From Penicillus capitatus (Eukaryota > Plantae > Chlorophyta): a stretch of DNA of 64,000 bases. Positions 1 to 55,476 of this stretch are shown piece after piece. The stretch is taken from NCBI GenBank assembly GCA_965649825.1, contig OZ287708.1:577411-641410 (forward strand), in the 5' to 3' direction. Under the pieces are notes generated by a model, which did not search any database, was not told the origin of the DNA, and worked only from the letters and a program-made list of their open reading frames with translations. Each line of letters starts with the position of its first letter. Position 1 is the first letter of the stretch. A program made the position numbers and the translations under genes.

Positions 1-225
1 GCCGTCCACCACACGAGCTGCCCCTTCATCATATGGCGCATCCGCTATTAAATCTCTGCCGATCAAGAAACGTCTGTCCGTTCGATGAAGAGCGATCGAC
101 GATACCTGACCCATCGTGGCTTATCTACAGCCGATACACGAACGGGGTGACGAAAGAGAGGGACTAAACGTCGTATACGCACACATCTATATCGCACCGA
201 GGACGTCTGCGAAGGGCACTTCATT

Positions 226-230
226 TTACA
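226..230 (-). terminator. Chlorophyte-type poly(A) signal TGTAA after TGH
   Basis: TGTAA on the minus strand 8 nt after the stop. UGUAA is the established chlorophyte near-upstream element. Confidence 0.6.
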
Positions 231-238
231 GAAATCGA

Positions 239-2781
239 TCACCGTTTCGATTTACCAAGTCGCCTTTCTTTACTTCGACGACGACGTTTAGATTCTTTCT
301 TAGCCTTCTTTTTCGCCCTTCCTTTCTTCAACGTCTTTAACAGTTTCCTGAACTCGGATGTCGACAGTCCTTTGAGGACTTCTTCATCGAATGTCTCTTC
401 TTTGCGTTCCTTCTTGCTCTTTTTCTTTTTACTGGGCTTCTCTTCTTCCACCTCGGATTCTTCGGAGGAAACGTTTAGGCGCTTTCGATTAGTGCTCGAC
501 GGATCGTTGGTCGTTTCTTTAATCTCTGAAAGATCGATCAAATCGGTTTCTTCCTGCATGTGACGACGATTGTGTTCAGGAGACATCTCTTCCTCTTCCT
601 CTTCCTCTTCATCCTCATCTTCCTCGGAAGCATCGAAAATTGACTTGAAAATATCGAGAGGTGGCTCTGTGTATTCTGGAGGCGGCAAAGAAATCTAAAC
701 GGCATAACATAAAGGGGTGAAGGCAAAGGTCGTGTGATGTGACTGACGTCAATGTCGTCTGCCACAGAGATTGTTGGACCTGCAGTCTCTGCTGAAGCGC
801 GCGGCTCTTCTTCTTGCACTTCATCCAAAGCAGATTCATATGTCATGAACTTGGAGGTGGTTTCTGATTCTCGAGGCATTCCTTTCAACGGATCGAGGAC
901 ATTGAATCGTTTATAGAGTAAAGGAACGGGATGCCAGTCGACAAAAGAACGAACGGGTGTGCATTCTCCTGGCTGAGGTGCTCTGTCAACAGATTTGTCT
1001 GCCTCTGGCTGCTGTTCACTCTTGGGCTTCGGTGCTCTGAGGCCTGCTGTACTCTCTTCCATGTGCAGCGTTCCTTCCGCGCTGCCTTTGACAAAATTCG
1101 ATTTCAATGCCGATCGGACTCTGTCGCGGTCTTCTTCAGGAACACCTCCAATAAAAGGATGCGAGACAGTGCGGCTGGCAATGGGTGTTTCCTGGATTCT
1201 CTCATCGCCCAGCAGAAATCCACGGTCGTCTGCTGTAAGAGGTGCCTCTCTCAGACCGATGCAGTGCACACCGAGTTTCTGAAAAGTCACTTTGACGTCC
1301 AGGAGTTTCCACCTGTAATACTCGGACCCTTCTCCACCGAAGAGAAAACCGAAACCATCCTCTCCCTGATGTTTTTGGCGGACAAATTCTTCGGACATCA
1401 TTCCTCCCTTTGCAACGAATACTGCTAAACTGTCAATCGTTCTTTTGAGATTTTCGTCGACGGGAAGCTTGGGGGCTGGAACAGAAGACTGCATGGATTT
1501 CACAGGATCTCCTTCGTTAGAAGGTTGCATGTCTTCATGCCTCCCTGTGAAATCTGTCGGAACGATGGGAAGCTGAAACGCTTTCTTCTCGTGCAGCACA
1601 GATCCCAGACAAAATCCTGCCACCAAAGATCCCTTCTTCCCTGTGGGCTTCTGTCCGATTCTCTTTGGCCCTCTGTCGCCGTCACATCATCAGACAGAAG
1701 GCCATACTAGACGGACATACTTTTCGATATGCCGTGTGTGTTTGCCTCCGTCGTCGGAATGATCAGACATATCGTAGTAGTTTATGTGATCATGGGCACT
1801 CTCTACGTAGTCTCCGATCTCACCGAACGTGTCTGTCTCTTCCAGTACGCCCACACCAAAAGCAATGCCGCGCGATCTCTTGATCGAAGACTTCGGCGAG
1901 GTGCCTTCTCCTGTCTTGTGTCTTTCGAAGGCACGGGATCCTCGAAACGGATCGAATCCCAATCCTTGGACATTCGTCTAAGAAACATCCATTTCATTTC
2001 TGCTCGGCATTTGAGCGAAGTGGACCTTGGGTTTCTCATTCCAGACATAGTTACTCTGCTGAGACAGTGATGCCTCTGGACCCCATTTGCTCTTCGCACT
2101 TCGCTGGAAACCCTCTCCGATGCCTTTCCCTTGACGCCATCCCATTTTCTGAAGCAATTGCACACCTGTCACATCACGCTGTCATTCCATCATGCATCGG
2201 ACGGAGAACATCTGTCAACCGATCGATTCGGAAACGCCCTCGACAAATTCGCCAATGATCTCTCCCGGAATGATCGGCCGAGCCATCGCTTCACGTTCCG
2301 TCCTCTCTCTTACTCTAGTTTGCTGCGATAAGGCAAATGTATCGTACCCTTCCTGCGCACGTACACTTGCAGACACTCTTCCCGCGAGTGGCAGGCATAC
2401 TTGCGTCGTAATATCCACTTGAGCCATCTCCTCCAATTCGTCTTTATCATAGAAATCTTGAATTGCCTGGGTTCTTTCTTCGGCGCGTTGTGACCGCGAT
2501 GTTCGAAAGCTCTTCGGAACAAATCCTTCCTGTACACCATTGTGTATCGAAAAACTTCGAAGTCAATCACTCTTTGTTACTTTGGTATCGACGGTGTTGA
2601 AGTAACCCGCCGAGAATCCTCCCGTAAAGGCACCATGGAGGCGTCGCCGACCGCGCTCATCGGTGACGATTTGCTCCCATACTCGCGGCGCACGAGACGC
2701 TTTCGATTGTTTTCGACTGAGCAGAGCGCTCTCTGCCGATTCGATCGGCGTTCCTAAGAATCCACGCCGTGTTTCGCCCAT
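239..2781 (-). CDS. TGH: G-patch/SURP(SWAP) protein, TOUGH/GPATCH1 family (multi-exon)
   Basis: N-terminus [14 protein letters not shown]...[25 protein letters not shown] matches the GPATCH1/TGH N-terminal motif. G-patch [18 protein letters not shown]-like [12 protein letters not shown]...YYRWKL and a Lys-rich tail ending at TGA 239-241 are present. Confidence 0.9.
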
Positions 2782-2822
2782 CGCTTAAATAGAGATTCCG
2801 CCCTTCACATCAATATGTCCAA

Positions 2823-3642
2823 TCAAGTGGCTTTAATCTCTCCAGAATTGGCGATGACGATCGTCTTCTTAGGCTTTCCAGAAGAAGTCCCTTGAGCTTC
2901 AATCTGCATAACCAGATCCATTCCCTCCAAAACTGCCGCCACACAACAATGCAATTCTTAAGTGACAGTTGCAGAAGATCAGAAGCGAAAAACCTTCTCC
3001 AAAGACGACGTGACGTCCATTGAGCCATCCTGTCACCACGGTTGTAATGAAGAACTGAGAACCATTGGTGTTGGGTCCGGCATTAGCCATACTGAGCAAT
3101 CCTGGAGTTGTATGCTGGAGATCAAAATTCTCATCCTGCAAAAACACAGGATGGCGTCTTGAGGAGCACGGGAAAGGCGACCTCGAATTTTGTGCCATAG
3201 ATCGATTCCCCTCCTGTCCCATCACCCCTCGTGAAATCGCCTCCCTGAATCATGAACTGGGGGATGATGCGATGAAAAGAGGAGCCCTTGTAATGCAAAG
3301 GTTTTCCCGATTTCCCCTTTCCTTTCTCTCCGGTGCACAAAGCACGAAAATTCTCAACCGTCTTGGGCACGGTATCGCCATACAATCCGAAAACAATGCG
3401 GCCTGATCACCACCACCAACTCCGCATAGATTGACATGAAAGCCGCGTGCTGTGTCCCTTACCAGCGTGTTTCCCATCGATTTCGATATCGAAGAAGGTC
3501 TAGTGACGTGACATCTCATCTTGTGGCTTTGTGTGATGGAGGGAGGTACTTTGTGCGTGATTTTTTTCTGAGGTTCGGCAGATACGTGCACCAAACACGT
3601 CAACGCGATGAAGAGCGCAGTTATTCTGCCGAACGTCATCAT
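2823..3642 (-). CDS. Secretory-pathway cyclophilin (cyclophilin-B-like PPIase), multi-exon
   Basis: Signal peptide [22 protein letters not shown], then [63 protein letters not shown] and HVVFGEVLEGMD. TGA at 2823-2825. A further in-frame ATG lies at 3741. Confidence 0.95.
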
Positions 3643-3784
3643 CTCAGCGAGGTTCGATGAAAAACGGCGATTGAGCTCGACACGCGTGACGGCGCAAATC
3701 ATAATAGACGCAACATAGATCGTTTTTATCGACACTGTCATTTCACACGATTCACAACGATATCAGAAACAAAAGAAAGCGAGA

Positions 3785-6700
3785 TCAAGAAAGATGAGAT
3801 GTTCCATTTGCATCGAAGTGTGGAAGCAAGTCAGCAATCTCTTCATCAATTTTCGTTTTGGGTCCATCCAAGAGGGCGACACGATTATTGAAGATATTGG
3901 GTCCGCACTCAACACTGAGCTTCTGAATCATCGCCTCATCCAGTTTGTCCTCGGGCACCCGGACCTCATCATTACAGACACTCACTCCGGTGCAAGATCG
4001 GCCTGAATGCTCTCTACCTTATTCTTGTCCGTGGGAGGAACGATGATGACGCGTTGAGCGCCTCCGATCAGCGCCTCTGCATCGGAGGTGACAAATCCGA
4101 CATTCATGGATTGCTCCGAATTCTGCTGATGCGCACAGGACTGCAGCAAAGTCGATGAGTGATCAAGAGATGGGACAAAGGGCGCACATGAATGGATGAG
4201 GCAATGCAGAGCATCACAACATTCTCCATGCTGATCCCGAGTCGTTGGACAAGGAATCGGATGGCCAGTGAACGCGATGCACGTATTGGAGTGATGTGCA
4301 GCAACGGGGAGACGCCAAATCCCTTCTTCGTTTTATCCACCTATGACCATTATGCACACACTCACTCACACGTCATCTCATCTCTTCTTGAGAGAAAGGA
4401 CCTGTAAGATGCATCCAACCCGGATACCCGCTTTCCTCAGCTGCGCATGGACGCGATCCACTACGCTGACGTCATCCAGTTTCTCCACGGGTTGTTTGGC
4501 AACTTCTTTCACGATGTGGAAAGGACCGGCCGAGATCTTGATGGGATTCAATAGGTATTTTTTTCTGTGTCGATCGGCCCACATTCTCTCGAGGATGTGC
4601 TCGATCGCCACCTTGCTCCATCGTTCATCGATGTGAATATCATATGGTTCATAAGAAGTCATCTCATCAGCACCTTGCCATACAAATAAATCTGCCCCAC
4701 TGTTGCAAATAATGAAGTCAATGTCCAGCAACTGGAGGCAACAAACACAGATTCAGCTGTTTGTCATGTAGAGAGATGAAGAGGGAGGCGTGGAGCACGA
4801 ACTTTCAGTTTTATCTTCTCGACGACATTGCAGGTGGCGTCAAAACAAAGCATGCTGGCAATGCCAAATCCGACTTGACTCGTTCTTCTGCGTTCCGAAC
4901 GGCGTCCGTATGCAGCAGTAACAACACTCTTGAGAAGGCTAATCGCCTGATGCGCTAAAGGAGAATTGTCCAGCGCCGCCACAATCAGACGCTTTCTCAG
5001 AGCCAGTCGTGGACGGCCAGCATCTCTTTCTTCCTCCGCCAGTCGAGATTCGGGATCAAATTTCATCGAATGGTCATCCATCGATGGAAAATCGGCAAGA
5101 TTCTTGAGATTCGTGTCTTGTATGGGACCTTCGTCAAGTCTTTCCTTGTAGTAGCGATCGTCCCAGCTGTTTCCCAATGGGGTAATGTACTTAATACTCT
5201 GAACATATTTCTTCTCCTGTTCTAAAAAGATCAGAACTTTCTTACAGTGTGCCGTCCATGAGTAAGCGCCGATATTGGCCAAGCCATTCCTGCTGAATTC
5301 TTCCCAGAGGTTCTTTTCCGTGAGTATTCGGACGAGAGCATCGCCGATCTCCTTCTCATTCAACGGATCGATAAGCAATCCGTTCTTGAGCTCTGCCACG
5401 ATATCGATCGGTCCACCATTCTTCGTGGCGACGATGGGAGCGCCGTGCGCCGCCGCTTCGATCAGTGTCAAGCCAAACGGCTCCTGCAAAGCAGGATTGA
5501 TAAAAATACCTCTTGTCCGCTCAACCAGACGGTAAATATCTTTGACTTGATCTTGCCGATGCTGTTTGGGATAGGCAACCATTCCATAGAGATCATACGC
5601 ATCGATCAGCTTTAACACATCCAACAACACTGATTTGCTACTCTTAGGCAAAGAATCAATGACATCTCTGTTGCCCATGACGAGCACCAAATTCGCCAGC
5701 TCACGCAATGTCTCATTCTGACCAAATGCCCGAACAAGTGTCGTGATATTTTTCTTGGCATCTGGACGGCTCAATGCCAAGATCACTGGCTTCCGCGGAT
5801 TCGACAGAAATCGAAAGATTTCTTTCCAGATGAGGGGCTCTGGTCTGTCGTGAAGCGGCGAAATTCCCCAATCCGCCGTCGCATCGTGCTCATCTACAGC
5901 CTCCGTCGATGTCTTTTTCGATTTGAGATTGTGAAAATCGAGTCCGGGTGGCACGACGCGCATGAGTGGCATGTGATAAGCACCCTTGTGCCTCCGGCGT
6001 ATCGTATGAAGGATGGATCCATTGTATCCATGATACAATCCCCACTGCTCATGCACTTCCTGTCTTGTACTTGTGAACACCATGATCGCTTCATCCAATG
6101 CCCTTTCTTCAGCTTCGATGCGTCTTCCAATAGAGTACGTCTTCTCAATATCTGCCAGACTTTGCTTCCCTGCTGCCAGCAGATGTTCACGTTTGTTGCG
6201 TCCGAGGGAGTGTCCAGTGAGAACCATATTGACACTGAGTGTCTGAGCCATAAGGGCTGCCACTTCACCTGCATCTGCATAGTGGCCATGTATGTAATAC
6301 AGCTCACAGGGTTCTCCAGCCTCGGCCAAACTGTTCAGCATTTTCTTCGCATGGGTCAGTCCACGGTCCGCGAATTCGCGAATGTGTGGCCATAGTTCCT
6401 CTTTGCGCATGTACGTTTCTGTCGGACCGCATGGCAGCCGGATAATAAAAGATCCCCCCAATTTCCCTTCGCTTTTCTGCAGGCATTCCTCCGGCAGCCC
6501 ATACGATGCATGAACACTCGGATCGCAAATCTGTCGCGTCAAGAGGTCTACTCGATGCACAGCAGGATGACGGCTGAGTTCTCGGGCCAACTCGACCACA
6601 TACTTCACCTATCCCACGCGTTCCATCTCTTCGATCAAAATGATCATAACAGCGCCTCACCTGTCCTCCAGTATCCGCATCGACTCCCAATTCCATCGCC

Positions 6701-7337: not shown

Positions 7338-10291
7338 ATGCAACGCGATACGATTGCAGCGAGTCCATCGACAAGCCCTCCGGCCAAAAAAGCGAAGAAA
7401 CAAGAGCCGAAAGAGACGAAAAAACGCACACGGAAACAAGTTGTCAAGAAATGACAGGTGTGATGACGACGTGATGTGTGATTTGGCTATTCCAGGAGCC
7501 ATCTCTGTCGAGATTGACAGCGAGACAGCTGACGGTTGCACGACTGGTGTCCTCATACAAGTGCGTCTGCTGTTTAGTGATTGTGTGATGGCAGAGTGAG
7601 ATTAGGTATGAGTGTAAGAAGATGCTACAGTCGATAGGGGAGAGGCAGAGACGATGGAAACGTGAATTAGAGACCGAATCTCAGACGCCTCCGATGCCTT
7701 GTACAAAGCCAGAGCCCCTGAACGAACCTACAGCGATCGAGTTTGGCGAACCGTCGCCAGCAGCAACGCCTCAACGCACATCACCCCATGCTAACACTGT
7801 ACCGTCCTGTCTCGACAGGAAGCTGCAAAGAAGGTGTGAAGCAGATCGAGGAGGGAATTCCTTGGAAACAGGCAGAACGCGATACGTTAAGAAAATGGTT
7901 CTTGGCTTTTGGATTTGATCGATGGGAGGATGTGCGTCACCTCTTCATAAAGAAACAGTTATTGACGAACTGCTTTCCCTGCCGATCAGGTAGAGGAGGC
8001 CGTGCGGGAGACACAGAAGACAAACCGCCACACACGGGAAGAAATGGAGATGGCCTGTTGGGAATTGCTGGCCGAGGTGGAAGATGGATTGGATGGAGAA
8101 GAGAAGACGTATCTTTCGCACAAGCTCGACGCCGTCCGTCATCGAATGCCGTTCAAAACACCCGGAATCCCTTGGTCCAGAGTCCAGAAGGTGACAACAC
8201 ATGGTTATTGACAGGCACTGAGTGACATCACCCTTTGATGGTGGTTCAGTTCCAAGCATCTGGAAGGACTTGGATTCGTCGACTGCAGTTTCTGGACAGT
8301 ATAGCACAGATCGACAAGCAGTTGGCTGATCCAGAGAAGCGTGCCTTTTTCAAAGAATGCATCAAAGATATCTCGGAGACGTTTCTTCCAGCGCCATGGT
8401 GGAATGCAGAATTGGATCTCCTATTCATTGCAGGCGTCTATGACTGTGGCTACGGAAACCACGAACCCATTCGCCACGATCCGATCTTCTGCAGGACATA
8501 CAAGAAATCCTGCATTGAGCTGGGATTGCGAACGGACTCCAAGTTTAAGAAATTCAAGTGCGAGATGGTGATGGATTGGCCAACGACGGAGCAGCTGAAC
8601 AGAAGACTGAAGAAAGTGGTGGATACACTGATAAAGGCAGAGAACCATCCAAAGCTTCCACCACCAGGAGAGATCCAGGTGGAATGGAGAACGCATGCAG
8701 ATCGCGGCATCACGCATTTCTGTAGTGGAATCGACAAGAGAAGCTGCGTATGTTGAAGAGTCTGATGACGTTTGGATTGCCTCAAGATTTCGAATATCCA
8801 GACGCCACTCCCCAAACCCAGAACGTAACGGATGCCTATCATCAGCGATGACGCCTCATCATCATGTGCGATGTGTTTGTTAGCGGTTCTTGGTGGAAAT
8901 GGGAATGCTTTTGAAGCATGCAGAAATGGGCGGTCTGTGTGTGCTAGACGGCAGGAGTCTTTGTCGGGAATTACTGGAAGAGATGGAGACGGTTATGTCT
9001 CAGAGAACGATACAAGTGAGCAGAGCAGACAGTGGCATTGACTCCGAGAGAGTGACTGTTTGTTTTCCTGTCAGAGATCTGCTGAGAGCTCAGATCTACA
9101 CGAGGAAGGAAAAGGCATCGATGGGAACAGGTGCGTGAGTGCAAGACACTGAGATTACATGGTCTATTGCTGGTTGGTGTTCAAGGACGGATGCGTTTGT
9201 TTTGGTGCCCTACAGCGCTGTCCATCTCAAAGAACAGCTAGAACTGTTGGGCGTGCTCAAATCACACATGCATCTGCTGAAACATGCAGAATTCGTCGAA
9301 GCCTTGGGACAGAACTCCAGAGACATCCCTGCTTGGTATCTGCCCCTTCTGTGTGATCATATGCGTGAACGGTCTGTCGCATTTAGGTGGGCGAATGGCG
9401 TGCATGACCATGAGATGTTGATGGGGACATTTTTTCATGGCTTCGGTGCGAGGAATGCCATCTTCTACAGTGCTTCTTTCTCATTCACACGTTGTGTCTC
9501 TCTTTTTGAGCAAACACAGAAGAGCATCTCTTTCGAAATGATGATGGAGGCCGGTCCGATCGTCGCCGTCGAGCGGTTCTTGCCAATCTGTGTCATCGGA
9601 TCATCCTCCCGGACATGTTCTTTCTAGATTGGCGGCTGATCTGCATGTCACCCTCAATCCCGAATGCATTCAAGCAGATGACATTCCGAATCCTAGCTGG
9701 CTGATGGATAGGTGCAAATTTCTGCATCATATGATGAAGCAACATACACCTAAGGTGAAAACTGGAGTCCGGTGAAGAGAAAGCATGACATGTCCTGCAC
9801 TGTAGATGGAGAGTCATACCCCTGCCAGAATGGCCCAGTTGAGACACCAACCTGAATGGCTGGCGCGTTTGAGCACAACCTCATCTGTCCTTCGCCCACC
9901 ATTTGTGCCTCAGACCGCGCCATCGATTTCACCTGTCCTACCTCAGAATCTCACTCTGCGCCCAAATGTCCTTTCTGTCCGTCCTGGACTTATTGGCGCT
10001 TCACAGCCGCATGCACTTCTGATGCTCAATACCTCTCAAGGGCTCCCGGCATCCTTGCAGCAATTCCAGCAGCAACTCAGACCAGGCTTCGCCCTTGCGG
10101 TCCGGCCGTATGTCCCCTTAGCCGTGCAGCCATCTGCGCGTGATCTATCTGCAGGACGTTATTCCCAACCGTCGACCAATGCAGGACAAACCATCTTCCA
10201 CAGTGTCCCCCCACAAATCATTCTGGCGTCACAACAGCCACCGACCTCATTGCCTACCGTGAGATTCCCTCGTCCACCTCCGGCACCTTAG
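7338..10291 (+). CDS. Protein with CHD6-9-like SANT/SLIDE modules and Q/P-rich tail, no ATPase seen (multi-exon, start uncertain: 7328 or 7338)
   Basis: WKQAERDTLRKWFLAFGFDRWEDV, GRTWIRRLQFL, PAPWWNAELDLLFIAGVYDCGYGNHEPIRHDPIF and WPTTEQLNRRLKKVV resemble CHD7-type C-terminal motifs. A second copy reads W..HDHEMLMGTFFHGFG. Stop TAG at 10289-10291. Confidence 0.65.
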
Positions 10292-10659: not shown

Positions 10660-10714
10660 CTTCACTGACGTCGCGCAATCGATCGGCGACGTGTTCAATG
10701 GCGAAGGTCGATAT

Positions 10715-14105: not shown

Positions 14106-14776
14106 GGAGAAAATTACATCTATTGTGATATTTAAGCCACTGTTGGTTCGTGCGTTTCGTTCGTTCTTTCTTCTGACTGCGAACTGCGTTTTCTGCGAAC
14201 TCGCGAACTCGCCAACTGCGACCTTGCGCACGTTTTCCTGTCTTCCGCCGATGAATCGTAACGATTCAGCAGGTAAACGAAAATGTTCACCTCGGGGGGA
14301 CAGCATTCAGCCGACGAACCGCCGTCGACGCAACCCAATCGAGATGCCGCCAGTGCTGCATCGGCGACCCCCCCCCCCACTACCTGGCGCCGAGATCCCT
14401 GTCCTCTACTGCACCTGCCGTGACTCGGCCTCATCAGATCGCTGCAACACTTACGGGGAATTCTGCAGTCAATCAAAGCAGGAAGAGATCGAGAAACGAT
14501 GCTTTGGCATCGAATTCCGATACGATTCTTTGTGGAGGAAACGAGGGAACTGAGGATCGTCGCGTGGCACCGAGATCCCTGTCCTTGTCTGCACCTACCG
14601 TGTCATCTAACGCAGAAGGACAGCCGCCAGCACCAGGAGATGATATCGAATGCCCAAACTCTGCTCCAGAAGTAGCTCCTTCTCAGTCTGCACCTACCGT
14701 GTCCACCGACGCAGAAGAGAAGTCACCAGCACCAGGAGACGATGTCCAATGCCCGAGCTCTGCTCCAGAAGTGGCT

Positions 14777-15778
14777 GTCGAGCCTTCATCTGTCTTACCG
14801 ACTGATCTGGAGCAACAACAAACAGTAGATGTCGAAGATCACAATCCAAGCCCTAGCGAAGGCCTCGCTGTCGAGCCTTCATCTCTCTCATCGACTGATC
14901 TGGAGCAACAACAAACATTAGATGTCGAAGATCTTAATCCAAGCCCTAGCGAAGGCCTCGCTGTCGAGCCTTCATCTGTCTCATCGACTGATCTGGAGCA
15001 ACAACAAACATTAGATGCAAGCCCTAGCGAATGCCTCGCTGTCGAGCCTTCATCTGTTTCATCGACTGATCTGGAGCAACAACAAACATTAGATGCAAGC
15101 CCTAGCGAAGGCCTCGCTGTCGAGCCTTCATCTGTCTCATCGACTGATCTGGAGCAACAACAAACATTAGATGCAAGCCCTAGCGAAGGCCTCGCTGTCG
15201 AGCCTTCATCTGTCTCATCGACTGATCTGGAGCAACAACAAACATTAGATGTCGAAGATCTCAATCCAAGCCCTAGCGAAGGCCTCGCTGTCGAGCCTTC
15301 ATCTGTCTCATCGACTGATCTGGAGCAACAACAAACAGTAGATGTCGAAGATCTCAATCCAAGCCCTAGCGAAGGCCTCGCTGTCGAGCCTTCATCTGTC
15401 TCATCGACTGATCTGGAGCAACAACAAACATTAGATGCAAGCCCTAGCGAAGGCCTCGCTGTCGAGCCTTCATCTGTCTCATCGACTGATCTGGAGCAAC
15501 AACAAACAGTAGATGTCGAAGATCACAATCCAAGCCCTAGCGAAGGCCTCGCTGTCGAGCCTTCATCTGTCTCATCGACTGATCTGGAGCAACAACAAAC
15601 ATTAGATGTCGAAGATCTCAATCCAAGCCCTAGCGAAGGCCTCGCTGTCGAGCCTTCATCTCTCTCATCGACTGATCTGGAGCAACAACAAACATTAGAT
15701 GTCGAAGATCTCAATCCAAGCCCTAGCGAAGGCCTCGCTGTCGAGCCTTCATCTGTCTCATCGACTGATCTAGAGCAA
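14777..15778 (+). repeat. Coding minisatellite: 11 full units plus a partial unit, 93-nt (x7) and 78-nt (x4) variants
   Basis: Units encode VEPSSVSSTDLEQQQTLDVEDLNPSPSEGLA (31 aa) or VEPSSVSSTDLEQQQTLDASPSEGLA (26 aa). Unit starts at 14777, 14870 ... 15740. Confidence 0.97.
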
Positions 15779-15959
15779 AACAACACCACAGATGACATCA
15801 ACAAATCAAGTCGTAGTGAAAAACACATTCTGGAGTCTCCAAGCATCCCGCAGAAGGACACAGAGGAACAGGCTGCAGATGGAGAAGGTTATGCCTGCCC
15901 AGGTCTTAACGATGTACACATGCTGGAGGCTTGTCCAGCTACAGTAACCGAAGGAGATG

Positions 15960-18480
15960 AGCATCAGCAGCAGCCAGTGTGGACTGGAGATGTTCACTGT
16001 CAGATGCCCAGAGTGCAGCTGCCGACCGAGCCGATGCCGGCCGACTCAGTCAATGAGCAGCAGCAGGAGGAGGAGACTGGAGATGTCCCCTGCCCGGTGC
16101 CCAGAATCCACCTAACGACAGAGCCACGTCCATCAGCCGATGTGCAGCAGCAGGAGACTAGAGATGTCCACTGTCCGACCGAGCTGATGCCAACAGCCAA
16201 CGAGCAGCATCAGCATCATCAGCTAGGGACTGGATTTGTCCCCCGTCCGATGCCCAGTGTCGACTTGCCGACCGAGCCTAGGCCTTCAGCCAATGAGCAG
16301 CAGCAGCAGGAGACTAGAGATGTCCCCTGCCCGGTGCCCAGAGTCCACCTACCGACAGAGCCGATGCCATCATCCCATGAGCATCAGCAGCAGCCACTGT
16401 GGACTAGAGATGTCCCCTACCCGGTGCCCAGAGTCCACTCGCCGACAGAGCCGACTCCGATTGACTATATGGAGGTGGATGAGCAGCCAGTGAGGACTGG
16501 AGATGTCAACCGTCAGATGCCTAGTGTCGACTTGCCAACGGAGCCGACGCCTTCAGCCAATGAGCATCATCAGCATCAGCTGGGGACTGGAGATGTTAAC
16601 CGTCCGATGCCAAGAGTCCACCAGCCGACAGAGCCGACGCCTTTAGCCGATGAGCAGCAGCAGGGGACTAGAGATGTCCACTGTCCGACCGAGCCGAGGC
16701 CTTCAGCCAATGAGCATCAGCATCAGCATCAGCATCAGCATCAGCATCACCAGCTGGGGACTGGATTTGTCCCCCGTCCGATGCCCAGTGTCGACTTGCC
16801 GACCGAGCCTAGGCCTTCAGCCAATGAGCAACAGCAGCTGAAAACTGGAGATGTCGACTGTCAGATGCCCAGAGTCGACTTGCCAACCAAGCCGACTGAC
16901 TCAGCCAATAAGCAGCATCAGCATCAGCATCAGCTGGGGACTGGAGATGTTCACCGTCAGATGCCCAGAGTGCAGTTGCCGACTGAGCCGATTCCGACCG
17001 ACTCAATGGAGGTAGATGAGCAGCCATTGGGGACTGGAGATGTCCACCGTCAGATGCCTAGTGTCGACTTGCCAACGGAGCCGACGCCTTCAGCCAATGA
17101 GCAGCAGCATCAGCATCAGCTGGGGACTGGAGATGTCTCCCGCCCGGATCCTAGAGTCCACTTGCCGCGCGAGCCCAGACCTTCAGCCAACGAGCAGCAT
17201 CAGCATCATCAGCTAGGGACTGGAGATGTCCACTGTCCGACCGAGCCGACGCCAACAGCCAACGAGCAGCATCAGCAGCATCAGCTGGGGACTGGATTTG
17301 TCCCCCGCCCGGAGCCCAGAGTCGACTCGCCGACCTACTCAATGGAGGTGGATGAGCAGCCATTGAGGACTGGAGATGTCCACCGTCAGATGCCCAGAGT
17401 CGACTTGCCAACCGAGCCGACGCCTTCAGCCAATGAGCATCATTAGCATCAGCATCACCAGCTGGGGACTGGATTTGTCCCCCGTCCGATGCCCAGTGTC
17501 GACTTGCCGACCGAGCCTAAGCCTTCAGCCAATGAGCAACAGCAGCTGAAAACTGGAGATGTCCACTGTCAGATGCCCAGAGTCGACTTGCCAACCAAGC
17601 CGACTGACTCAGCCGATGAGCAGCAGCAGCAGCAGGGGACTGGAGATGTCCACCGTCAGATGCCCAGAGTGCAGTTGCCGACTGAGCCGATTCCGACCGA
17701 CTCAATGGAGGTAGATGAGCAGCCATTGAGGACTGGAGATGTCCACCGTCAGATGCCCAGAGTCGACTTGCCAACGGAGCCGACGCCTTCAGCCAATGAG
17801 CATCATCAGCATCAGCTAGGGACTGGATTTGTCCACCGCCCGGAGCCCAGGGTCGACTCGCCGACAGAGCCCTCGCCGACCCACTCAATGGAGGTGGATG
17901 AGCAGTCATTGGGGACTGGATTTGTCCCCCGTCCGATGCCCAGAGTCGACTTGCCAACCAAGCCGACTGACTCAGCCGATGAGCAGCATCAGCACAAGCT
18001 GAGGACTGGAGATGTCCACTGTCCGACCGAGCCGACGCCAACAGCCAACGAGCAGCATCAGCAGCATCAGCTGGGGACTGGATTTGTCCCCCGCCCGGAG
18101 CCCAGAGTCGACTCGCCGACCTACTCAATGGAGGTGGATGAGCAGCCATTGAGGACTGGAGATGTCCACCGTCAGATGCCCAGAGTCGACTTGCCAACCG
18201 AGCCGACTGACTCAGCCGATGAGCAGCATCAGCAGCTAGGGACTGGACATGTAGAGCGTCCGGTGCCCAGAGTCCACCTGCCAACCGAGCCCAGACCTTC
18301 AGCCAACGAGCAGCAGCAGCAGCAGCTGGGGACTGGATTTGTTCACCGTCCGGTGCCCAGACCTTCAGCCGACGAACATCATCATCAGCTGGGGACTGGA
18401 CATGTCCACCGTCCGGTGCCCAGCGTCCACCTGCCAACCGAGCCCAGACCTTTAGCCAACGAGCAGCAGCAGCAGCCGGC
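15960..18480 (+). repeat. Degenerate modular repeats (LGTGDVHRQMPRVDLPTEPTPSANE-type) joined by (CAG/CAT)n microsatellite linkers
   Basis: Dozens of similar GGGACTGGA(GAT/TTT)GT...GACTTGCC.ACCGAGCC units with variable His/Gln runs, e.g. 16704-16750. Confidence 0.93.
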
Positions 18481-19298
18481 GCCTGACAATGACCCCTCGT
18501 TCTTACTCATTGAAGAACTTTTAGGGGGATTGTCATTGACAGAAGCCTTGCCAGCCGGGGAAGAGCAGCAGCCACTGAGGACTGGAGATGTCCCCCGCCC
18601 GACTACTAGACACGAGGTGCCATCCGAGCCCTCGTTGACTCTGGCAGCCAACACGGAGCAGCAGCAACAGCAGCCGATGCCTGACAATGACCCCTCGTTC
18701 TTCCACATTGAAGAACTTTTAGGGGGATTGTCATTGACAGAAGCCTTGCCAGCCGGGGAAGAGCATTGCCCTTCGAATGAAACCCCGCCAGATGAGTCTA
18801 GATCGCCAGAGACTCTGCCAGACGAGTCCGGCTTTGTGACTCCAGAGCCCGCAAGAAGATTCTCTGGCCATCACCGCGATCACCTTGCTGGATCGCCAGA
18901 GATGCCGCCAGAGATCCCGCCAGACGAGTGGGGCTTTGTCACCCCAGAGCCTACCATGTTCTTCTCGCGGCGTCATCGTCTTCCTGACCCAGGTTCGCCA
19001 TAAATCCCTCCAGACGAGTGGAGCTTTGTCCCCCAGAGCCTACCATGTTCTTCTCGCGTCGTCATGCCTTCTGATGCAGATCGACGCAGACCTGCACATG
19101 GAAACAACCGTCCAAGCCTGGGAACAACGCTTCTACCCTAGCCGCTTTCTTTATCTCGTTCCTGCTTCGGAATCGAGGTTCACAGAACTGGGTGACATAG
19201 AGGATCCAATGAACGCCCTTAGCCTGTTTCTTGATTGTGACATGATGTGTGTTAAACATGTTGTCTTTGATGTGACAGCTCTTTACAAACATCATCCA

Positions 19299-52302: not shown

Positions 52303-54397
52303 TCATATCTCTTCAGAAGGATGGATGCCCGAGTCGGGAACGGCGTCAAGAATGTCGGAGAACTCTTTTTCGAAGAGAACGCCGGCTCTGTGGCTTTTTC
52401 CTGCGACGTGAAGATCGCGCCCCACCTGAAGTGCCCATACCTGAGCGTGTGACTGATAGCTTAAGAACGTGGTGATCATCAAAAAAGCAAAACCTGAGAA
52501 ACAGAGAGTGTGGTAAGGGGAGATGACAAGGAGAGCTTTGTGGTACCTGTGTAGACGAGGGGCACGCCTGGATCGTATTTGATCTCTAGTCCAGTGCTTC
52601 CGCCGATATCATCGATCGTCAGCTTCATGTCCGAAACTTCGATTGGAGTACCAGACCCTGGCCGTCGAACGCCTGCAAACTGCCCGGCGCTGTCGTAAAG
52701 GATGACGCTTTGAAAATCGTTTGCCAGAACTGCAGGAGAGATGCGTATGAAGTCGGTCGGAAACGGGAGGCGTACGCTTACCGGAGATGCCTTTCGGGAC
52801 AGAGCTGTCGTCTTGCGCGGCACCGGGTGTCGGAATAAACGTGGCGAAGACCTTATCGTTTTTGTTCTGGCGAGATTTGAGTGTTGCCATAGGAAAACGC
52901 ACAGAGCGCTTTCCCTCTGGAAAGAAACTCGACTCGACAGTTACTGCCAAGGAAGACATTCCCCAGTCTGTCTATGCAACAGACACCACGTGCATCTCCG
53001 TCTACGAATGGCGAGATCGTACTTGATACATTGTGATACCCTCAAACCGCAAAGGATGGTTGACGGAAATGCGTCTTTTATCAATGACTCGGTTGCTGCC
53101 GCTGCCATCGAGAACAGAGAGATCGGAATAAAACTGATTGATGCCGCCATCAGAACGATAGTCGATGGTGAAATCTTCCAATCGTAGAGATCGGAACGCT
53201 CCGGAGGGTGGAACGGCGAAAAAGGAATTTGGACGGATGTGTTGCTGCACCTCGATCGCTCTTCCCTTCAAAACAATCAATCGCCTGCTGATCGGGATCG
53301 AAAGCGAATAATCTACTCACCTCAGGAATCATAACTGTTCCCTTGAATCCTCCAAGAACGCCCCACATGATGCCGGCAATCGTGACGAGCAAGGCGGCAT
53401 GTACACCGATCGGCGCAAGACGTGCGACAAGGGACTTGAAGCCGTAAAGACTGCCGTTCTTCAAAAATACCTGGATATGAAGAAACGGGTTGTTTCTTCT
53501 CGATCGAATAGGTCGATCGTCACTTCGTATCCACGTTTGGAGAGGACAACGCCTAGATCTTTGATGTTGCCGTCCGGTAGTACTTCTGCGTTCTCTTTCA
53601 ATGCGATGCCGTTTGGTGTCTTGGCAAACCTCCACCTTTTAGCTACCTAAAGAACAGGTGTCTGGCATCCAGTATCGAAAAAGATTCTTGGCAGATATCT
53701 CCTTGCCTTAGCAATGGGCCACTGACGCGTATGGGTACAAGCAATCAGCTGGGCTACTAACAATCCAAGCAAGCCATAGAAATAAGGCGCCGTGTAAATA
53801 TGATCCAGCTGCAGAAAGAGAATGATCTTATAAGTCAAGAATCCAAACATTTTTGATTTGCCATCCGGGTAGCTGTCCACATAAAACTGAAAACTCTACA
53901 CACATTGCATCATCGCTTCTGTAAGCAGTCTGCACGTTCTCGACGATCAGCCAACCTTTCCCTGCTCGATGACGGTACCCAAGGCTGAGAGCACAGATAT
54001 GGTAAACAAGACAGCCATGGAACGTGGCAGAGACGACAGCTCCAGCAAGATTCGACGATATGCTGTCCGCATCGCCCGCTGTACCACAAAAGAGTTCTCT
54101 GGCACAGACGTCCATTCCACCCGCGTTCCCGTTTTTCCTCCCATCTCCGGGGCATCACGCAATGATGGGTTCGCGTTTGCACGATCTACGAAGTACGATC
54201 GAGAATGGGATATCTGTGATGATTTCCATGCCTTGGGTCGAGGGTTCGGCATCGTCCGTATCTTGTGTTCGAATCGCTCTTACTTGGACGATGCGTGGTG
54301 CCCTCGCGCGCTGTTCTTTCGGAAGAGCTTTTCGGTTCGATCGGACGCCGATCGTCGCTTTCGCCTTCATCGCCACACATCGCAGTTCGATCGGCAT
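52303..54397 (-). CDS. CCS1: Cytochrome c biogenesis protein CCS1/ResB, plastid-targeted (multi-exon)
   Basis: ELSSLPRSMAVLFTISVLSALGTVIEQ, LQLDHIYTAPYF, ACTHTRQWP, RLAPIGVHAALL, ISVNHPLRFEGITMYQ, IKYDPGVPLVYTG. Confidence 0.95.
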
Positions 54398-54456
54398 CGT
54401 TATTGGAACGCGTCATCAAACGCGGCTTTTTTGATCAACTCTGCTTTGTCGGAAAC

Positions 54457-55476
54457 ATGACGATGTTGATGTGCCACGGTCCGAGTCTGCGTCCTCCGTT
54501 TCGCATTAGCTCTCGTAAACCGCAAGACAAGTGCCGAACCATGCATTCGACTCTGCGCATTTCTCTGCGCCAATCGCGTTTCTGTTGGTCGCAAACGCAC
54601 ATCCGCCAGCGTCTATTTACCAAAGCCGCCTTGGGACAGACCAAGACGTCGGGAGATGACGGTGGGTCAGGAGACGGCGGCGGTGGACGGAATTTGGGTG
54701 GGTCAGGTGGAGGAGGCGAAGAAGAAAACGACAACAGCAAATCGAAAAGGTTCACTCTATGGAAAGGCTGGGAAGAACGCGTGCAGTGCGACCCCGCATT
54801 CCCGAGCAAAGTTCTCATTGAGCAGATTATCGGTGTCGGCGCCGCCGTAGTGGGAGACATGTCATCGCGTCCACACTGGGGACTCTATGAACTGGATTTC
54901 GTTTTCTCGACGCTCATCGTCGGCAGCATCGTTAATTTTGCCTTGATGTACTGCCTGGCGGCGACACCTGCCTCATCTGCTGCGGCAAAGGGATCGTTAC
55001 TACAAAAGCTCTTCTCGGAACAGACGCTAAAAAACATGGGTGCACCTGGAGGACACATGTTTGAGAGAGGCTATTCACTGGGGGCACGTCTAACCAATCT
55101 GGCATACAAAGGATTTCTGTTCGGGCTCGTCGGCGTTGCATCGGGCCTTATAGGGACGGCCACGTCGAATGGACTCATTCTCATTCGAAAACGTGTGGAT
55201 CCAGATTTTGAACCGCAGAATAAGGCACCCAATGTAGCGATGAATGCCTTGGCCTGGGGTGCCCATATGGGTCTCTCAGCCAACACACGTTATCAGATGC
55301 TCTATGGTTTGGATACCGTCGTGATGCCGGCATTAGGCCATCAATGGTTTTTGGTTTACTCGGCCGTGATTCGAACATTGAACAATGCTTTCGGTGGCAC
55401 ATCCTTTGTCTTTTTTGCCAGACTGTTTGGCGTGCAGAAAGTGAACCCCGAAGGATTGGACACAGAAGGAAAATGA
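54457..55476 (+). CDS. RER: RETICULATA-related (DUF3411) plastid membrane protein, single exon
   Basis: Transit peptide and Gly-rich linker; WEERVQCDPAFPSKVLIEQ, ELDFVF, MGLSANTRYQ, NNAFGGTSFV. Confidence 0.92.
   Translation: MTMLMCHGPSLRPPFRISSRKPQDKCRTMHSTLRISLRQSRFCWSQTHIRQRLFTKAALGQTKTSGDDGGSGDGGGGRNLGGSGGGGEEENDNSKSKRFTLWKGWEERVQCDPAFPSKVLIEQIIGVGAAVVGDMSSRPHWGLYELDFVFSTLIVGSIVNFALMYCLAATPASSAAAKGSLLQKLFSEQTLKNMGAPGGHMFERGYSLGARLTNLAYKGFLFGLVGVASGLIGTATSNGLILIRKRVDPDFEPQNKAPNVAMNALAWGAHMGLSANTRYQMLYGLDTVVMPALGHQWFLVYSAVIRTLNNAFGGTSFVFFARLFGVQKVNPEGLDTEGK

Follow-up and report, generated by a model that had tools for sequence, protein, structure and literature searches.

The described systems closest to the locus reported here are the bicistronic nuclear loci of green algae (Gallaher et al., 2021; Duenas et al., 2024), and leaky scanning has been shown for those of Chlamydomonas and Auxenochlorella (PMC7896298; PMC11291117). 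In the curated sets the first open reading frame (ORF1) has a median length of 291–357 nucleotides (nt) and a weak start context, and the ATG observed/expected ratio upstream of the second one (ORF2) is about 0.43–0.49 (PMC7896298; PMC11291117). Inter-ORF medians in green algae range from 40 to 260 nt, the bicistronic spacer medians being 183 nt in Chlamydomonas and 40 nt in Auxenochlorella versus 2.5–3.4 kb between colinear monocistronic genes (PMC7896298; PMC11291117). Here we analyse a 64,000-nt stretch of Penicillus capitatus (contig OZ287708.1, positions 577,411 to 641,410), hereafter the window, in which a cyclophilin gene is followed after only 41 nt by a TGH (TOUGH/GPATCH1-like) gene. 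The cyclophilin/TGH pair does not appear in the main text of the studies on green-algal bicistrons, in which no ulvophyte was studied (PMC7896298; PMC11291117), and no literature on nuclear polycistrons in Bryopsidales was found. The pair is one instance of a lineage-wide packing of tandem genes within tens of bases, and we read it, with a confidence that we would put at about even, as two interlocked monocistronic transcription units in the compact genome of a Bryopsidales-like green alga.

All coordinates of the cyclophilin-TGH locus refer to the minus strand (Table 1). The splice model of the cyclophilin gene has GT..AG introns of 46–61 nt and gives a product of 200 residues, which ends in ...SGEIKAT and is followed by TGA at 2825–2823. 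Its exons carry the Pfam domain Pro_isomerase, its identity with endoplasmic reticulum (ER)-type cyclophilins is 70–83%, and its best named matches are CYP19-4, CYP20-1 and cyclophilin B. The N-terminus is a hydrophobic, signal-like segment, a predicted signal peptide judged by eye from the sequence, and this arrangement of Pro_isomerase behind a hydrophobic N-terminal signal sequence is that of the ER/secretory cyclophilin-type peptidyl-prolyl isomerases. The TGH gene, whose introns are of 48–54 nt, runs from the ATG at 2781 to the TGA at 241–239 and encodes 746 residues. Its exons carry the Pfam domains DUF1604, G-patch and Surp, which is the architecture of the TGH/GPATCH1 family, and its homologs bear the names TGH or TOUGH. 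The best match is P0001, from a JGI environmental contig (68% identity), and the nearest named one belongs to Ostreobium quekettii (40%). Its N-terminal alignment with the TGH proteins of close relatives, other green algae, Klebsormidium, Selaginella and Arabidopsis begins at about residue 1. Cyclophilin (ER-type) and TGH (nuclear RNA-processing) are two separate, functionally unrelated genes placed head to tail.

The 41-nt gap from 2822 to 2782 reads TTGGACATATTGATGTGAAGGGCGGAATCTCTATTTAAGCG. The TGH ORF cannot be extended upstream, since there is an in-frame TAA 6 nt ahead of its ATG. The gap also contains a minimal ATG-TGA start-stop, which is absent from the gaps of all four relatives described below and is thus specific to the window. 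The sequence-only reading of this locus had anchored the gap on the cyclophilin stop codon and on the TGH start codon, and both anchors, the length of 41 nt and every coordinate that it gave proved to be correct. Its claim that such a gap is too small to hold two untranslated regions plus a promoter is likewise supported.

Cyclophilin was found directly upstream of TGH, on the same strand, in four further loci: L001 (JGI 3300008031) and L008 (JGI Ga0099821), which are spliced RNA contigs, and L003 (Logan SRR33785046) and L002 (Logan SRR2835676), which are genomic. The gaps in these four related taxa measure 22–38 nt (Table 1), and a spacing so similar for the same pair is more than chance; the comparison with related algae that had been proposed from the window alone thus came out in favour of a conserved arrangement. 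The gap sequences themselves cannot be aligned among taxa, the only shared feature being the ATTTAA that immediately precedes the ATG of the three closest ones, and the stop-to-ATG frame offsets (2, 1, 0, 2 and 2 across the five taxa) reveal no fixed frame relation. All four cyclophilin introns of L002 and L003 are at the positions of those in the window and the first TGH introns are also common, intron 3 of cyclophilin being GC-AG in L002 (about 780–830) and in L003 (about 8580–8620) where the window has GT. In a synteny comparison, cyclophilin was not found next to TGH in Ostreobium, in an ENA eukaryote or in Trebouxia. Since the pair occurs in five related taxa and in none of these more distant green algae, the adjacency is a derived feature that was afterwards conserved in one clade. 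A search with cyclophilin homologs added no loci, this protein being too conserved.

The RETICULATA-like protein encoded elsewhere in the window (54463–55473) has two Caulerpa lentillifera proteins as its nearest named relatives (69–79% identity), and a relative of 93% identity lies on a 520-kb ENA metagenome contig (ERZ26696514 ctg303635, L009). This contig, with about 168x coverage, is colinear with the window from 45 to 64 kb at about 93% protein identity. No near-identical TGH fragment of L009 turned up in the TGH search, and the locus may be rearranged or uncalled there.

The two RNA contigs cross the junction. L001 contains a complete cyclophilin ORF (74–664) and a complete TGH ORF (687–2903) and lacks all ten introns, whereas L008, also intron-free, extends from the 3' end of the sucrose-phosphate synthase (SPS) gene, with its last intron removed, through a 175-nt spacer, the whole cyclophilin and a 36-nt gap into the TGH 5' end, which is spliced across intron 1. 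The ten introns missing from L001 and the six missing from L008 correspond to positions occupied in the window. They were also seen, where these could be read, in the genomic relatives (the four cyclophilin introns and TGH introns 1–2 in L002 and L003, the last SPS intron in L003); TGH introns 3–6 are modelled in the window only. L002 and L003 share the introns of the window although they are more distant from it than L001 and L008, and a loss of every intron in the latter two is hence very unlikely. Judging from these absences, L001 and L008 are spliced RNA, that is, RNA is evidently continuous over the gap in two related taxa, which agrees with the expectation that transcripts would span the junction. 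Both are short-read assemblies from relatives and not full-length reads. Their JGI samples are presumably coral metatranscriptomes.

The meaning of this continuity depends on what else the same assemblies join. L008 links SPS to cyclophilin over 175 nt that hold two copies of TGTAA, and another JGI contig, L010 (1022–1130), joins the 3' ends of a convergent pair, RETICULATA-like and riboflavin kinase, whose stop codons are 102 nt apart and whose spacer has TGTAA (minus strand) and AATAAA (plus strand). L010 shares its sample with L008 and is therefore probably RNA too. Since convergent genes cannot form a polycistron, this suggests that overlapping transcripts are usual in this lineage. In the relatives, RNAs thus carry parts of neighbouring genes whatever the orientation of these (L008, L010). 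Since contigs also join TGTAA-separated and convergent neighbours, the continuity between cyclophilin and TGH is best taken as overlapping or read-through RNA and not as a functional dicistron.

The window genome and those of its relatives space their tandem genes tightly in general, a point absent from the sequence-only reading. The eleven tandem spacers measured in the window, L002, L003 and L008 are all short, from −4 to 221 nt, and, the cyclophilin-TGH gaps included, they form a continuum and not two classes (−4, 22–41, 28, 30, 55, 109, 109, 124, 142, 175 and 221 nt). The typical colinear distance in the lineage is only about 100–220 nt, other pairs lie at −4 to 55 nt, and the cyclophilin-TGH gap is the shortest among the five spacers measured in the window. 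Sizes are pair-specific and conserved: 22–41 nt for cyclophilin-TGH, 30–55 nt for Mpv17-SmG, 142–221 nt for SPS-cyclophilin and 109–124 nt for TGH-DUF3531. The DUF3531-like gene that begins after TGH in the window resembles the DUF3531 gene that comes after TGH in L003.

Several of these junctions have features of their own. At the Mpv17-SmG pair of the window the sole nearby TGTAA (10333) is 3' of SmG. In L003 (12520–12545) the DUF3531 stop and the start of an enoyl-CoA hydratase (ECH) gene overlap as ATGA, and a TGTAA located 12 nt past the DUF3531 stop falls within the first codons of ECH, which makes it a candidate poly(A) signal lying inside the gene downstream. In L002 (3554–3587) 28 nt, occupied by an 8-codon mini-ORF, separate the TGH stop from the ATG of a gene for a protein with a signal peptide and a UGGT-type Thioredoxin_12 domain.

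The absence of TGTAA between the two genes had been put forward from the window as an argument for a shared transcript. The observation itself stands: on the minus strand no TGTAA is present between 3976, in an SPS intron, and 230–226, beyond the TGH stop. In the window and in L003 the TGH stop has a TGTAA 8–9 nt behind it, and a further copy lies about 50 nt past the SmG stop, an arrangement that fits a role as poly(A) signal; where present, the motif is often just past stop codons (TGH, SmG, an FHA gene and an Arm gene). It is under-represented in the whole window (27 and 24 copies per strand versus about 62 expected). However, as a universal poly(A) marker TGTAA was rejected, because only about 5 of about 17 identified window genes have one within 200 nt past the stop, and its absence after cyclophilin is consequently weak evidence. 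AATAAA-like or ATTTAA elements are present in several of the cyclophilin-TGH gaps.

According to the interlocked reading, the TGH promoter and transcription start would be within the 3' part of the cyclophilin gene, and cyclophilin 3'-end formation would occur at or past the TGH start codon. The two RNAs would then overlap, a part of the transcripts would read through both genes as by-products, and each protein would be translated from its own capped mRNA. We propose that the pair has stayed linked in evolution because the control region of the downstream gene is embedded in the upstream one. Speaking for this reading are a pair and a tiny gap that are conserved while the gap sequence is not, RNA contigs that also join convergent neighbours, the continuum of spacers, the TGTAA inside ECH in L003, the long and ATG-undepleted upstream ORF, and the divergent upstream neighbour of cyclophilin in L002. 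Several observations weigh against it. It relies on predicted positions for the start of TGH transcription and for the poly(A) site of cyclophilin, and no conserved element, whether promoter-like or an internal ribosome entry site, was detected in the cyclophilin 3' end, where synonymous-site identity is flat (0.42–0.48 versus a mean of 0.44, in a test of low power). No TGTAA that could serve cyclophilin was found before the end of TGH in the window, nor within less than 1.5 kb downstream in L001. Both RNA contigs that bear cyclophilin (2/2) run on into TGH, and the 90% cluster of the collection, which consists of these two only, yielded no monocistronic cyclophilin contig. Finally, a consistently tiny, pair-specific gap, together with the ATGA overlap seen elsewhere, would also fit coupled translation.

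A genuine bicistron of any kind is in our opinion unlikely, if still serious, and would need a mechanism other than leaky scanning. The classical green-algal form, in which leaky scanning gives access to ORF2 (Chlamydomonas, Chromochloris and Auxenochlorella), seems at first suited to the locus: this is a green alga, both ORFs are same-strand nuclear genes at an inter-ORF distance within the described range, their colinearity is conserved among relatives and RNA covers both. However, the RNA evidence consists here of short-read contigs of relatives and there of full-length reads, and short spacers are the norm in this lineage and do not define a separate class. The cyclophilin ORF, moreover, is of 591–603 nt, about twice the curated median, and contains 15 ATGs in the window and 9–16 in the relatives, 4–6 of them in-frame Met codons. 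Its ATG observed/expected ratio of 0.96–1.46 is not below that of synonymous-codon shuffles and contrasts with the values of about 0.43–0.49 of the curated sets. In 4 of the 5 taxa the cyclophilin AUG has A or G at −3, an indication that its start context is not obviously weak. With so many ATGs and no depletion, leaky scanning does not fit, as the sequence-only reading had supposed from the ATG-rich upstream ORF, and we hold it to be very improbable. An ATG-free run of 121–137 nt before the TGH ATG, seen in four taxa, was considered as a signal and rejected, since the amino-acid sequence predicts such a run. A fusion protein made by readthrough or frameshift was also discarded: the frame offsets vary, and with the in-frame TAA of the window this excludes it.

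There is a stronger case for an obligate bicistronic mRNA in which cyclophilin and TGH share one capped transcript ending at the TGTAA past TGH, and in which plain leaky scanning has no part. Candidate mechanisms are termination-reinitiation over the 22–41-nt spacer and a low flux that passes, on an abundant cyclophilin mRNA, through short internal ORFs out of frame. Of the spliced contigs, L001 includes the two ORFs in full and L008 cyclophilin with the TGH 5' end, and every cyclophilin contig of the clade runs on into TGH. The window lacks TGTAA from the cyclophilin stop as far as that of TGH, and in 4 of the 5 taxa no other AUG comes between the cyclophilin stop and the AUG of TGH. In addition, the gap length matches the 40-nt median of the Auxenochlorella bicistrons, the ATGA overlap of DUF3531/ECH in L003 resembles coupled translation, and polycistronic mRNAs are established in green algae. 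Against this stand the 600-nt ORF1 with its 9–16 undepleted AUGs and mostly A or G at −3, and a frame relation that is not conserved. No conserved reinitiation motif was found at the junction, a TGGGA resembling the termination upstream ribosomal binding site (TURBS) being present in only 1 of the 5 taxa, and no conserved RNA structure was found either (fold z-scores of −2.2, −0.4, +0.2, +1.0 and −0.9). Reinitiation after an ORF of 200 codons is normally very inefficient. The same assemblies also join non-polycistronic neighbours, convergent ones included, and on balance we consider the obligate bicistron improbable. A broader form of the idea, to which we give still less credit, is that in siphonous (Bryopsidales-like) green algae many tight tandem genes whose upstream ORF is long give rise to true polycistronic mRNAs, and that the downstream ORF is translated without leaky scanning, for example by efficient reinitiation once a full-length ORF has terminated; cyclophilin-TGH, Mpv17-SmG, TGH-UGGT and DUF3531-ECH with its ATGA overlap would be the examples. 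The length of the upstream ORFs of the tight pairs (200 residues for cyclophilin, about 230 for Mpv17 and about 740 for TGH) is unlike that in the curated algal bicistrons and counts for the interlocked reading.

It had also been suggested that SPS, cyclophilin and TGH could form one unit. The upstream gene is well identified, its ORF 4764–6608 carrying Glycos_transf_1 and a sucrose synthase GT-B domain (Pfam). The lack of TGTAA in the 142-nt spacer of the window does hold, and L008 contains the SPS 3' end, cyclophilin and the TGH 5' end in one spliced contig. However, a single tricistronic unit was rejected as highly improbable. TGTAA is present between SPS and cyclophilin in three relatives (L001, L003 and L008), including both homologous spacers of known length (221 nt in L003, 175 nt in L008), and spacers of 142–221 nt are of ordinary size for the lineage. 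In L002 the upstream neighbour of cyclophilin, at a distance of about 125 nt, is a divergent minus-strand ORF and not SPS, and cyclophilin therefore has its own promoter there. A last suggestion, that a precursor RNA is cut by trans- or cis-splicing at the acceptor-like TTTAAG just 5' of the TGH ATG, started from an AG that lies after T-rich sequence 2 nt before that ATG in the window. This did not survive the comparison and is hardly credible: the position of the AG is not conserved, the L002 gap has no AG at all and the only one of L008 is part of the stop codon, and both spliced contigs, L001 and L008, keep the whole gap. No RNA family, spliced leader included, was matched by Rfam in the whole window, and Gallaher et al. 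report no evidence for such processing in green algae (PMC7896298).

Other described systems share parts of this picture. Spliced-leader operons of nematodes and kinetoplastids likewise consist of closely spaced, co-transcribed same-strand genes, whereas this locus has neither a conserved acceptor nor a leader and keeps its gap in the mature RNA. Viral termination-reinitiation (the TURBS of caliciviruses, M1/BM2 of influenza B) resembles it in a long ORF1 with an ORF2 start within tens of nt or overlapping, as in the ATGA overlap of DUF3531/ECH in L003, but no conserved 18S-complementary motif or RNA structure was found 5' of the cyclophilin stop. In agaricomycete fungi, polycistronic transcripts were reportedly recovered by Gordon and co-workers in 2015 by long-read cDNA sequencing. 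Those are described as spliced read-through RNAs over adjacent same-strand genes of normal length, with unproven downstream translation, as is the case here; they belong to another kingdom and their spacers are generally longer. Williams and co-workers are said to have found in 2005, among genes with very short spacers, transcripts with sequence of several genes, oppositely oriented neighbours included. Overlapping gene expression is on record for eukaryotic genomes that have been compacted (Williams et al., 2005, as cited in PMC6009652). The likeness to these genomes lies in such spacers and transcripts and in start and end signals that are presumed to be inside neighbouring genes. The window, in contrast, comes from a free-living, photosynthetic and intron-rich nuclear genome that is only moderately compact, and its 64 kb also include long stretches of low density, the tightness being pair-specific and conserved.

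Table 1. Features of the cyclophilin-TGH locus and tandem spacers in the window and its relatives (CYP, cyclophilin; spacers are from stop to next ATG).
Feature	Sequence	Position or length	Strand	Basis
Cyclophilin gene (ER/secretory CYP19-4/CYP20-1 or cyclophilin B type)	window	2823..3642	-	splice model, Pro_isomerase
Cyclophilin exons (n=5)	window	3642-3550, 3499-3463, 3402-3182, 3135-2994, 2932-2823	-	splice model
TGH (TOUGH/GPATCH1-like) gene	window	239..2781	-	splice model, Pfam, N-terminal alignment
TGH exons (n=7)	window	2781-2581, 2529-2401, 2352-2220, 2165-2026, 1977-1721, 1672-748, 694-239	-	splice model
Cyclophilin stop-to-TGH start gap, 41 nt	window	2782..2822	-	splice models
Minimal ATG-TGA start-stop in gap	window	2805..2810	-	ATG at gap offset 12, TGA directly after
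Start of next tandem gene, DUF3531-like	window	1..114	-	translation; ATG at 114-112, 124 nt after TGH stop
TGTAA, probable poly(A) signal of TGH	window	226..230	-	8 nt past TGH stop; same in L003, 9 nt
SPS stop codon TGA	window	3785..3787	-	ORF 3785..3985 is SPS C-terminus
SPS-to-cyclophilin spacer, 142 nt, without TGTAA	window	3643..3784	-	ORF ends and splice model
Mpv17/PMP22 stop to SmG/LSM start, 55 nt	window	10660..10714	-	TAA 10717-10715, ATG 10659
Cyclophilin-TGH gap	window and relatives	window 41 nt; L001 22 nt; L008 36 nt; L003 35 nt; L002 38 nt		
Tandem spacers	window	Mpv17-SmG 55; SPS-CYP 142; CYP-TGH 41; TGH-DUF3531-like 124; RETICULATA-next ORF 109 nt		
Tandem spacers	L003	Mpv17-SmG 30; SPS-CYP 221; CYP-TGH 35; TGH-DUF3531 109; DUF3531-ECH -4 nt		
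Tandem spacers	L002	CYP-TGH 38; TGH-UGGT-type gene (Thioredoxin_12) 28 nt		
SPS-CYP spacer	L008	175 nt		

Among the remaining contents of the window, plastid-type genes are those encoding the acetolactate synthase small subunit, PII, RF2, ResB and RETICULATA. Taken with the protein identities given above, they indicate an ulvophycean, Bryopsidales-like green alga whose introns are very short. An ORF of 163 codons at 53969–54460 (+), which ends 2 nt before the RETICULATA-like ATG, was considered as a short ORF1 gene and rejected: it is conserved in L009 at 73% amino-acid identity versus 93% for its neighbour, looks non-protein-like and is probably not a gene. It could be a leader/promoter region, or a first-exon part of the opposite-strand ResB gene. 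Two adjoining long ORFs of about 1,060 and 520 codons occupy 14255–19000 (+) and consist of in-frame tandem repeats with periods of 78/93 and 93/183 nt; they are rich in P, Q, E and H, reach up to 59% G+C and gave no Pfam match. They represent either a repetitive protein or a satellite open by chance.

If the pair were truly bicistronic, nuclear polycistrony would be extended to ulvophycean seaweeds, and its 600-nt AUG-rich ORF1 would be a case beyond the leaky-scanning model. It would then point to a second eukaryotic route for the translation of downstream ORFs and provide a compact co-expression cassette for algal engineering. If, as we favour, the two genes are interlocked monocistronic units, they would constitute a clear and conserved case, in a free-living alga, of a promoter and a poly(A) site that lie within the coding sequence of a neighbour. 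Such an arrangement would imply a risk for annotation, as gene finders and transcript assemblers will fuse genes of this kind, and it would explain why some gene pairs stay linked in evolution.

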